A stretch of 63,973 bases of DNA, counting the filler, from Reticulomyxa filosa (Eukaryota; Protista; Foraminifera): the NCBI GenBank assembly GCA_000512085.1. It is 25 parts of 25 records of this genome, joined end to end, with 100 filler letters (N's around TTAATTAATTAA, not from the genome) between each part and the next. Parts side by side here need not be neighbours in the genome. Positions count along the whole stretch, not along the records: positions 13,293 to 16,419 come from ASPP01027853.1; 24 more parts are not named here. One strand, written 5' to 3'. Below are positions 12,355 through 16,419 of the stretch, in pieces. Position 1 is the first letter of the stretch. Every line of letters begins with the position of its first letter. The notes below the pieces were generated by a model. The model made no database searches, was not told the DNA's origin, and saw only the letters and a program-made list of their open reading frames with translations. The position numbers and the translations under genes are program-made.

Positions 12355-13574
12355 TTCTCCTTTGGTAACCACACAAACAGACAAACAGAAAATCGGAATA
12401 TTCTTTCTTCAACCCAAAGTCAGGTGGTCTTCGCGTCACAAAGGGGCACATACTTTTGTAGAAGTTAATTAAAATAAACCAATAGCTTTAAAGTAAAATT
12501 CCAAATTAACAAATAATTTCAGATTTTTTTCTGAAAAAAAAAACAAGCTGTTGTGAACCTTTAGTGTTAAGCAACAAAAAAAGCTAAACTTTTGTGTAAA
12601 CCTATTTCCAGTGTAATAAGCTTTTCTAAAACACGTTTTAATTTGAGTAATCTCTGTACTATACCCTCTAACAACAAAGAAAAAAAGGGGAAGGGAAAAT
12701 TCATATAAGATGTCGAGTGAAAAACTATCATGATTTTTTTAGGGTGCTATTCCTCTTGGACTGTAGAAAGTGAAAGATTGACTTGGATAAAATCGTGGCA
12801 AGTATGAGTACATACGATACAAATCTGTTTACCTACGAAATGAAAGCACAATGAAAACAAGAGAAAGAGAAGAAAAATGAAAGCAGAGTGAAAAGTAAAG
12901 AAAATGGATTGGATGACGCAGCAAAAACTTTGGGGTGAAGTGTCGATTTTAAAAATGTGTCATTAATAGTTCTGTTTGCCAGTCTATGCGATTTGTCTGA
13001 ACAATCACACCACAACGGATAAAAATCATGCAAAAAAGAAGATAACATGGACTCACTTTGGATTAGCTGTTGTTTGTGGGTTGTACATTAAATGATATTT
13101 GATTTGGTCACGTCTTGTTTGTTGTGTTTTTATACAATACTTGTGCTAATAAACACGAAAACTTAATTAATTACTTCTTCTTGCAATTGTGANNNNNNNN
13201 NNNNNNNNNNNNNNNNNNNNNNNNNNNNNNNNNNNNTTAATTAATTAANNNNNNNNNNNNNNNNNNNNNNNNNNNNNNNNNNNNNNNNNNNNTTAAAATA
13301 ATTTTTTAAAGATGTTTTCGTGTAAACTTTTTTTTTATAAATGTGGCTCTCAATCCAACAACATCTTGAAAACAAAAAAGCGGTTGATCAATCAATAGAA
13401 ACAAACAAAAAAAATCTGTCAATTAACCAATAAAAAAAAGTAATCAGTCTATCAATCAATTCGTCAATGAATAGCAACAAAAAAATACTACGCATAAATA
13501 CAACGTATAAAACTAGTAAAAACAAAAATTAAAAATGCATCAATCACTTTAATCGATTGAATAGAGAAAAAAAA

Positions 13575-13755
13575 TTGAGGCAGCCCTAAGGCTTCCCGGT
13601 CCATTTCTTGCAAAACCTGGTACTGGAGACTCAAGTACCGCCCGGACCAAGCCTTCCCAACCCAAACGATACCCAGTATGCAACTACCAATGTTTCACAA
13701 GATGTCCCTAGCTCATCCTCACTTCCACTTTAGTGTTCGAGGTAGAGCTTACCAT
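13575..13755 (-). ncRNA. Candidate structured Pol III RNA with 5S rRNA-like three-way junction, about 180 nt
   Basis: GC-rich island in AT-rich DNA. The ends pair (GGUAAGCUCU/AGGGCUGCC). Nested stems AAGGCUU/AAGCCUU, GGUCC/GGACC, GGUACU/AGUACC and a GCAA-capped hairpin. A T8 run follows directly. Confidence 0.55.
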
Positions 13756-16170
13756 TATAATTCTACACTTCTTTTAATTTTTAAAAAAATAAATTAAAAT
13801 TAATAACAAATGGCATTAATAATGATGCAATAACTAATTCATATCTACAACCAACAAGGAGGATTGAAATAATATTTTGTATAATCCCAAATAATTTAAT
13901 GTCAATCAATTTAATGATACATTTTTCCACATAATAATTTTATGATAAAATTGTGATCACAATGTTCTTGATGACCATATAAGTTATGATTATTATCGTC
14001 GATCAATACTTTGTTACGTGTAAATTGACTCTTTTGAATATATACATTTTGTATTGGTTTCCTTGGATTTTTCAAAGATGTAATATCTTTGAGAGTTTTG
14101 AATACATGTCTCTATGCTGGAGAGTCTTCGATAAACGACAGCATCTTTATCCAAGGGCAAGCAAGACATGATTGATTTGTAAAAGCAAGCGCACATCGCA
14201 AGCAAACATGGCATTGTCAATCTTATCGGTATCCACACACAGAGATAGTCATATATTTGACTATGATGTACGTGGACGTAGCCCATAAGTAAGTTGATTA
14301 CATGTTCTTCAATGAACTTTGGAGTTAAATTATCTATCATGTGATCTTCCAAATATTTTATTGAGATCAAAAACGGGTCCAAGTAATACAGCAGTACATC
14401 ATTAAAATAATATATCTTCACTTTATGTGGCAGTAGACAATGATTATTTCTCAATGGTATCACAAATGATTTTAGCTGTATTTATTTAATAAATATAATT
14501 ATTTTTATTTTTATTTTATTTAATTTGATTGTAAATATAAAAAATAAACTATTTGGAAGATGATTTAAAATTGACGTCAACAAACCCTAGGAATCGGCGC
14601 TTGTCTTGATGAATGTATAAAAATGTATCGTATTTGCATATTTGATCGAATTTTCCAATGGAATGATAACTTATCTGGTTTGTATTTTGTATATGAACTG
14701 AAGTGCTCTATTGTTGACGATGGGTTCATGATCTTGGAAAATGATGTTAGTGTGTGTCCCCCTGGGATGGAAGAACAGACTCACAATATCGCGACGGATG
14801 AGTATTCGAAGAGGATAATACCATGGCAGATTCAGTTCTAACAACCACAACATGACCTTTTCATACGGATTGCGAAGACGGAACAAATAACGCAAATGGA
14901 GGACACAGTTATAGAGACATATGCATAATATACCATGACTTATCAAAAGATTCTCCTTCGCTATCATTGCATAGTCCTGCTGACGCATCTCAGTAATACT
15001 GACATAACCATTGTCCTGGATCTGTGATTCAGTTTAAACTGTGATTCCATTCCTTCCACATTTGACATACATTTTTATTTATGTTTATCTCATTTTTTAT
15101 TTTTAAACACTTCTGAAAAAATTCAAAGACTTTGGGATGGCTCCGCGTTACAAATCACCATCGTCGATATTTCACCAGGGTTAGTGCATACTTTTTTTCA
15201 ACTTCGTTTTTTTTTTCCCTTACTTTTTTGTTGTTGAAATAGAAAAATACAAGCAACACGGCAAGAAATGACAAAAAAGGCTGAGCAGTTACTACAAACT
15301 GATTGATTCGATAATTAAAAAGTTATGCGAATTAAAAAAAAATGTTTCAGTGTCAACATAAGATCAATGTTTTAAAAATTTTTCGTTACGTAATATTTAT
15401 TTCTTGTCAATCTTTATTCATTTATACACACATGTTTTTATCTTTTTTTGTTTATGTAGAAAATTTTAATAATAACTTAAAACAAAAGTGTAGCCAATTC
15501 AACAAACCTTGTGTGGATACAAACAAAATATGCAAGCACTGGCAATATTTTTTGTTGGAATTTTAAAACAACTTAATAAATTGAATATGTTAGAAAATGA
15601 AGGAATTTAATTGTGACGATATGTACTTAATCTAAATAGTGTAAAGCATTCAAATGAGCCACTAAATGTTTGCATTTTTAGAGGGTCCATTTGTTCGAAA
15701 ACGCTAAGCGGTCTGTTTATTTGAAATGAAATTAAATTGAAAGTAATTTGGATATTATATTTTCAAATATCATTAAAAGATAAATGATGACTACAAGGTT
15801 TTGTGTCTTGTCAAGTTAAACCCCTTTAGAAAAAATAGTTTTTAAATTCTTCCAAGTAAGAATGTTGGCATCAGGTAAACTTGCTCTTTTCTTTTGATAC
15901 ACTGAATTTTACTTTCTTTGACTTGAATACTAACAATAAAGCCATTGCCAATAACGTTTTGTCGGTCTCTGACTTGCGGTTAACCGAAGACAACGTTAAA
16001 AATTTGAAGCTGTTAATTTTCGCATTTAATATAAACTCTGAAAAAAATGAAAAGAACAATACTTGTAATTTAGAGAACGATATTGTTTTCCATATCGACA
16101 TAGTTTATATTCTTCTCGGACTTATCGTAGATTTGGAGGGCGATCCCATCTTGATCGAAAGACAATCTCA

Positions 16171-16419
16171 ATGATATGGCTGATGTTTGTGACTTATTTC
16201 TTTGGTCCATTGTATTTGCTTGGCCGACTTTTCACTCCATTCTATCCATTTGCATGTGTCATCTATTATTCCATTGTCTTTGGAAGTATTTCTGAAATCA
16301 ATACTTTGCAATTATTATTGACTGGTCTATACGGTCTTCTCATTTTTTTATTAGTCTTTGTTGTCTCTCCCAACACGTTTTGGTGGATGTGGTTATCTTG
16401 GCATGTTCTACCAGGTTTG
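16171..16419 (+). CDS. Hydrophobic membrane-protein fragment, truncated by spacer
   Basis: Open frame with 2-3 hydrophobic segments; family not recognised. Confidence 0.35.

Follow-up and report, generated by a model that had tools for sequence, protein, structure and literature searches.

A G+C-rich island of 176 nt in the DNA of Reticulomyxa filosa is best explained, among the readings weighed here, as an orphan gene for a small structured RNA of Pol III type, of unassigned class, and it is not a recognisable 5S rRNA. This assignment is tentative and our confidence in it stays below even: the gene is a candidate and its transcript is one that we infer from the DNA. The island lies in a window of 63,973 nt (the whole stretch analysed, in which 25 parts of this genome are joined end to end), within the piece that spans positions 13293-16419 and comes from ASPP01027853.1. 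The observations that make the gene reading the most likely one are a G+C content of 51% in a 30% background, a minus-strand fold with a z-score of -3.86 which is the best of 66 window-strands, component hairpins that reach z-scores of -4.07 and -3.11, a fold that keeps a z-score of -2.58 when G-U pairs are forbidden, a T8 run located 3 nt past the last hairpin, and the absence of coding periodicity. Against it stand the absence of a homologue, and so of covariation, in metagenome, genome and viral scans, the absence of any Rfam family, A and B boxes that do not rise above chance, an apical helix in which 9 of the 19 pairs are G-U, and the frequency of T and A runs nearby. In addition, two mutually exclusive folds are each partly supported, a situation which can also arise in a sequence without selected structure. 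A sequence-only reading of the same DNA had proposed an expanded, divergent 5S rRNA and, as a fallback, a minus-strand structured RNA that might be a new product of Pol III. The fallback agrees with the G+C island, the strand-specific fold, the T8 run and the lack of codon periodicity.

The candidate RNA body occupies 13578-13753 on the minus strand, nt 1 being the G at 13753 and nt 176 lying at 13578. A composition scan gave about 30% G+C for the piece and 51% for the 176 nt of the island, and 100-nt windows contained 44-52% G+C over the island versus 18-30% in the flanks (18-28% in those next to it), with sharp edges. In the RNA sense the island is made of 33% G, 26% U, 23% A and 18% C. A G+C island is a classical sign of structural RNA genes in A+T-rich genomes. 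As in the cases where such islands have been used for prediction, a sharp rise from 30% to 51% G+C goes together here with a fold that is significant on one strand; the island has the value of a predictor.

Immediately downstream in the minus sense, a T8 run (A8 on the plus strand) at 13567-13574 is a candidate Pol III terminator and a candidate source of a U tail. Only the three nucleotides CAA separate it (13574-13567) from the end of the 3' hairpin at 13578, and its eight residues exceed the usual minimum of 4-5 T for the 3' end of a Pol III gene, read on the coding strand. A run of at least eight A residues has a chance of about 1% of falling in any given 14-nt window, taken piece-wide. 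However, runs of at least seven A residues are clustered locally, four of the seven in the piece lying within 13407-13574 (about 170 nt, on the T8 side), and the plus strand too carries a T4 and a T5, 19-25 nt beyond the island. The T8 run, which had been taken to favour the minus strand, is present at 13567-13574, but given the local density of A runs and the T4 and T5 on the plus strand it is weaker evidence than at first appearance.

The minus strand of 13575-13755 has a minimum free energy (MFE) of -71.3 kcal/mol, compared with -54.2 ± 4.4 for 200 dinucleotide-preserving shuffles (z -3.86), and none of the 200 folded as well. The plus strand of the same interval gave -37.7 versus -36.8 for its shuffles (z -0.22). 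When 180-nt windows were folded on both strands over the whole piece, the minus strand of the island was the strongest fold of the 66 window-strands. The strand preference noticed at first sight is therefore real, and these values support both the strand call and an unusual structure. With G-U pairs forbidden the layout of three hairpins was retained at a z-score of -2.58, and one shuffle in 150 did as well. As 17 pairs of the whole-island MFE fold are G-U, the island is not an inverted repeat at the DNA level. The end of a MITE or of a Helitron was considered and rejected, since the terminal complementarity depends on G-U pairs.

These values also bear on the main rival, which we regard as possible but somewhat doubtful, namely that the island is a remnant, G+C-rich but without function, for example a piece of a decayed mobile element, a pseudogene or an old insertion. 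The quality of its fold would then reflect a composition rich in G and U together with complementarity that arose by chance, and its T run would be one of many in an A+T-rich spacer. A remnant would agree with the lack of relatives and of a family match in the searches run, with the two incompatible sets of helices, with the many G-U pairs at the apex of the central hairpin, and with the local density of A runs together with the T4 and T5 on the other strand. The neighbouring open reading frames (ORFs) are orphans as well, as expected in a repeat-rich or fast-evolving region. It is opposed by the departure from dinucleotide shuffles, which persists without G-U pairs, by the strand asymmetry of the fold, by sharp island boundaries that match the complementary ends, and by the absence of a DNA-level terminal inverted repeat and of a second copy in the piece.

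For the minus strand, the MFE and centroid structures both show three hairpins in a row, of which the middle one is imperfect and 111 nt long and the last one short, and they differ from the fold first drawn. The 5' hairpin (nt 5-44, 13710-13749 on the minus strand) has 13 pairs, one of them G-U, formed by AGCUC/GAGCU, CCUCG/UGAGG and CAC/GUG and closed by a UAAA loop; folded alone it has a z-score of -3.11, and it forms also on the plus strand and without G-U pairs. The central hairpin (nt 46-156, 13598-13708, minus strand) extends over 111 nt with about 47 pairs and, folded alone, reaches a z-score of -4.07, with none of 200 shuffles as good. Its 20 basal pairs (13702-13681 with 13625-13606) are mostly Watson-Crick and join UCUUGUGAAAC-A-UUGGUA-G-UUG to CAG-UACCAG-GUUUUGCAAGA; this basal helix takes up both the string that had been likened to loop C of 5S rRNA and the GNRA hairpin of the earlier drawing. 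In the apical helix, 9 of 19 pairs are G-U, and a G-U share that high is unusual for functional helices. The 3' hairpin (nt 157-176, 13578-13597, minus strand) pairs GGG.AGCC with GGCU.CCU around a UUAG loop and is followed by CAA and eight U residues.

The fold of the sequence-only reading is a different one, and every helix listed in it does consist of standard pairs where it was placed, including the UUUU-GCAA-GAAA hairpin, which is present at 13606-13617. Terminal helix I joins nt 1-10 to nt 167-175 (3' strand at 13579-13587 on the minus strand, pairing with 13744-13753; nine pairs, of which two are G-U, and one bulge), so that the ends of the island are complementary, and this helix competes with the 5' and 3' hairpins. 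The second helix joins nt 11-19 to nt 87-94. The third domain of this alternative fold (13588-13655, minus strand) has 22 pairs with a single G-U, contributed by AAGGCUU/AAGCCUU, GGUCC/GGACC, GGUACU/AGUACC and the UUUU-GCAA-GAAA hairpin. It and the central hairpin are mutually exclusive. The third domain is almost wholly Watson-Crick and is also adopted in the plus-strand MFE structure; folded alone, it has a z-score of -0.96, which is not significant.

With all of these helices enforced, the best energy was -46.9 kcal/mol, versus an MFE of about -71 and a shuffle mean of -54: the Y-shaped structure misses the optimum by 24 kcal/mol and is less stable than shuffled sequences are on average. 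Keeping helix I and the third domain gave -50.7 kcal/mol at best. The pair probabilities of the enforced pairs were mostly at or below 0.001, with a maximum of 0.045 for the outer pairs of helix I, and the 66-nt arm that would be helix III has no convincing structure. The three-domain, 5S-like fold can thus be drawn and is not preferred, as its energy and the z-score of its third domain indicate. Two points favour the earlier drawing, namely the nearly complete Watson-Crick character of the third domain and the complementarity of the island ends. By rough estimate, the 20-pair basal helix and the 12-nt inverted repeat, which has a 3-nt bulge, would each arise by chance with a probability of 1e-2 to 1e-3; the two exclude each other. 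A pseudoknot that would join both folds was rejected, as no more than 3 nt would be available to bridge the 20 pairs of the helix. Thermodynamics and co-transcriptional order would favour the three hairpins in series.

If the gene reading is right, the island would make up the body of a single-copy gene, transcribed on its own from the minus strand into a small non-coding RNA of about 180 nt. Pol III, or another polymerase that halts at T runs, would start near 13753 and stop within the T8 run (13574-13567), and the transcript would so acquire a U tail such as La-type proteins bind. The RNA alone would fold into a well-formed 5' hairpin, a G-U-rich imperfect hairpin of 111 nt and a short G+C-rich 3' hairpin beside the U tail, and it might serve as a protein-binding scaffold of a lineage-specific ribonucleoprotein (RNP).

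To look for known RNA families, Rfam 15 (4227 models, including 5S_rRNA (RF00001), SRP, RNase P/MRP, snRNAs and Y RNA) was searched with a threshold of E<=10 in four nested ranges: the whole piece, 221 nt around the island, its 3' half and its 5' half, the filters being laxest for the short inputs. The 5S covariance model gave no match at E<=10 in any of the four ranges. The sole match in the 221 nt around the island was a chance miRNA (E 3.9), and each half gave zero matches. The Infernal-type check that had been suggested against the 5S, SRP, RNase P/MRP and snRNA models therefore came out empty at E<=10.

That the island encodes a divergent 5S rRNA, expanded to about 176 nt by extra sequence in both the helix III and the helix IV/V arms, appears to us very improbable. 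The island does share with 5S rRNA genes the small size of the RNA, a T run after the gene (here the T8), 5' and 3' ends that can pair, and a possible three-armed drawing in which standard pairs make up the terminal and second helices as well as the branched third domain. It differs from them in that the covariance model gives no match, the conserved core is missing, none of loops A, C and E shows its signature, and the three-armed fold is disfavoured. A conserved loop A strand lies between helices I and II of 5S rRNA, whereas 0 nt separate these helices in the proposed model, so that no loop A residue is found there. Nor did we find, on reading the island RNA against the 5S consensus, the AGUA/GAA motif of loop E: between AAGGC/GCCUU and GGUCC/GGACC the sequence offers either a 2 x 5 loop (UU versus GGGAA) or a GGG bulge, and AGUA is absent.

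The likenesses to loops E and C that had been pointed out consist of short strings. Although GGGUUGGG, GGGAAG, GUACUUG and CGAAC recall 5S motifs, the matches fit at least two incompatible alignments to 5S, with either UUGGUCC or GGUACUUG placed against UAGUACUUG, and the 5S covariance model missed all of them; about one 7-mer match is expected by chance between sequences of such lengths. 5S genes are usually multi-copy and often arranged in tandem arrays, and they are dispersed in some eukaryotes; no second or tandem copy of the island was seen in the 3.1-kb piece. To our knowledge, expanded 5S rRNA has been reported only from bacteria and archaea. The existence of such forms speaks for the idea, with 89 expanded 5S rRNAs in 51 bacterial and archaeal genomes carrying insertions of 13-109 nt and reaching lengths of 130-290 nt, for example in Halococcus and Thermoanaerobacterales (PMC7812874). 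All the known ones, however, retain the conserved core, which is also what led to their detection (Stepanov and Fox 2021, PMC7812874). Here, 176 nt compare with about 120 nt for 5S, and no conserved core was detectable in the Rfam ranges. Our literature search on foraminiferal 5S returned nothing that bears on the island. The expanded 5S rRNA proposal thus finds no support in the Rfam search, in the energy of its fold, in the loop A and loop E signs or in the core. Were the island nevertheless the 5S rRNA of this organism, it would provide the first case of expansion segments in a eukaryotic 5S, with consequences for our view of how the central protuberance is built; the results obtained here point the other way. 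The lesson of this case is that a likeness of short strings to 5S loops, together with helices that can merely be drawn, is insufficient: the 5S layout failed against the covariance model as well as in the comparison of energies.

Membership in a family other than 5S, as a very divergent SRP, RNase MRP/P, spliceosomal snRNA or Y- or vault-like RNA of a fast-evolving protist that has drifted beyond the reach of Rfam, is unlikely in our estimate. Size and T run would suit Pol III RNAs, the ends can be paired as in Y, vault and 5S RNAs, and two likenesses serve as leads only: GGCUUGGUCCG resembles the 5' end of Y RNAs, and the GCAA-capped branched domain is similar to the SRP S domain. However, neither SRP, RNase P/MRP, snRNA and Y RNA nor any other Rfam family gave a relevant match at E<=10 in the four ranges, even in sub-windows of 103-221 nt. 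The Ro-binding helix of Y RNA, GGUC(C)GA/UUGACC, has a bulged C and lies at the RNA ends. In the island, GGCUUGGUCCG is internal, the GGUCC at 13644-13648 is fully paired with GGACC, so that the C that must bulge in Y RNAs is paired, and RF00019 gave no match at E<=10. Y, vault and adenoviral VA RNAs are like the island in their length of about 100-180 nt, their high hairpin content, their 3' U run, their pairable ends and their independent genes in spacers. They differ from it in several respects: the island matches no Rfam model, shows A- or B-box-like sites at no more than chance level, lacks the Ro helix with its bulged C, and prefers three hairpins in series to one closed rod.

Helix 8 of SRP RNA combines a GNRA loop with a conserved symmetric loop that has an AGCA strand. 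The first-drawn fold is like the SRP S domain in that a stem leads to a junction with two hairpins, one of them GNRA-capped (GCAA). Unlike SRP RNA, the island has no Alu domain, is too short for a eukaryotic SRP RNA and gave no match at E<=10, and the string AGCA is absent from its RNA. Reading of the island also revealed no C/D or H/ACA boxes, no P4-forming CR-I/CR-V of RNase P/MRP and none of the snRNA recognition sequences (ACUUACCU, GUAGUA, ACAGAGA, U5 loop). A scan for tRNA and tmRNA returned none. No B box was detected in the island at up to two mismatches, and a single A-box-like site was at chance level; the DNA upstream of the island is uniformly A+T-rich, which masks any promoter of TATA/PSE type. 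Further candidates were rejected on sequence reading, namely hammerhead, C/D and H/ACA snoRNAs, U1, U2, U4, U5, U6 and spliced-leader RNA. Telomerase RNA was discarded on the plus strand, where CCCAACCCAAAC and one CCCUAA occur but there is no fold (z -0.2) and no template of 1.5 repeats, and on the minus strand, which has no C-rich single strand.

Homologues of the island were sought in several collections. Zero matches were obtained in viral contigs, either with a mixed pattern of the island RNA or with an island 21-mer. In metagenomes the mixed pattern returned 18 loci, all of them attributable to chance, on contigs of 55-74% G+C and with no likeness outside the pattern; as this pattern fixed G and C positions, it was biased towards G+C-rich bacteria. 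The 21-mer had one exact match in bacterial and archaeal genomes, TTGGTCCGGGCGGTACTTGAG in an uncultured Kordiimonas sp. (CANNDZ010000001.1, locus L019, 2942-2962), which we consider a chance match, as it lies inside an apparent coding region, has no flanking similarity and belongs to no RNA family. Nothing similar to the piece was found in plasmid and phage collections, and a literature search returned no occurrence of an island 19-mer. It is conceivable, though we would not count on it, that the island represents a small-RNA family not described before, whose members would be about 180 nt long, contain an extended G-U-rich hairpin, end at a terminator of Pol III type and be specific to the A+T-rich eukaryotic lineage of the source. 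If transcribed, the island would yield a small RNA of no assigned class for an A+T-rich eukaryote that has been little studied, and an entry point to the Pol III transcriptome and the RNPs of this lineage.

It remained to consider whether the island belongs to a protein-coding transcript, either as an exon (plus strand, 13579-13794) or as a structure in the 3' untranslated region (UTR) of the minus-strand ORF ending at 14017; we judge this improbable. A plus-strand frame at 13579-13794 is open for 72 codons and crosses the entire island, and two signals are splice-like, the GGUAAG at the 5' edge of the island and, downstream, an AG preceded by a pyrimidine tract. In the other sense, the island is co-oriented with, and near to, two upstream ORF blocks (15033-14674 and 14481-14017), and it starts about 260 nt past the ORF stop at 14017 in the same orientation, which makes a 3' UTR element a minor rival. 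Yet codon-position periodicity is absent, G+C by codon position being flat in the island (0.47/0.52/0.55) whereas the neighbouring ORFs dip at position 2. An open frame of 72 codons among six frames at 50% G+C is expected about once in five (an estimate), the strand that folds well is opposite to the open frame, and the putative downstream exon meets a stop at once. Translations across the island had no protein relatives, no Pfam-like features and no exact protein record.

The upstream blocks (minus strand, 15033-14674 and 14481-14017) are stop-free and in the same frame, and they are separated by a spacer of about 190 nt with 12-21% G+C, which is intron-like. Both display a codon-like periodicity, with the position-2 dip in G+C of real coding sequence. 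Searched separately, neither block had a Pfam match, a relative in word searches or an exact record, and an Atlas search with the neighbouring ORFs gave weak, unrelated leads only. A 19-nt inverted repeat (14344-14362 and 14543-14561, 95% complementary) brackets the end of an ORF block and the A+T-rich spacer, and the window 14193-14372 folds with a z-score of about -2.8 on both strands. Farther away, 117 codons on the plus strand (16069-16419) form a frame that is still open where the piece ends; its translation is hydrophobic and resembles a membrane protein, and it had no usable Atlas match.

On the other side of the island, right after the T8 run, an A+U-rich hairpin of six pairs (UCAAUC ... 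GAUUGA, with a 9-nt loop) can form on the minus strand at 13540-13560, and beyond it the same strand reads T5 AA T5 at 13523-13534. Were the T8 read through, a hairpin would come after a U-rich site, which is the order seen in snRNAs; in such A+T-rich DNA this arrangement is insignificant. Farther downstream in the minus sense, at 13369-13485, a 28-nt A-rich unit occurs three times, 29-35 nt apart, each copy ending in TCAATCAAT, together with related TCAATGAATAGCAAC strings; these repeats lie close to the island and may represent either repetitive spacer DNA or an array with a regulatory role.
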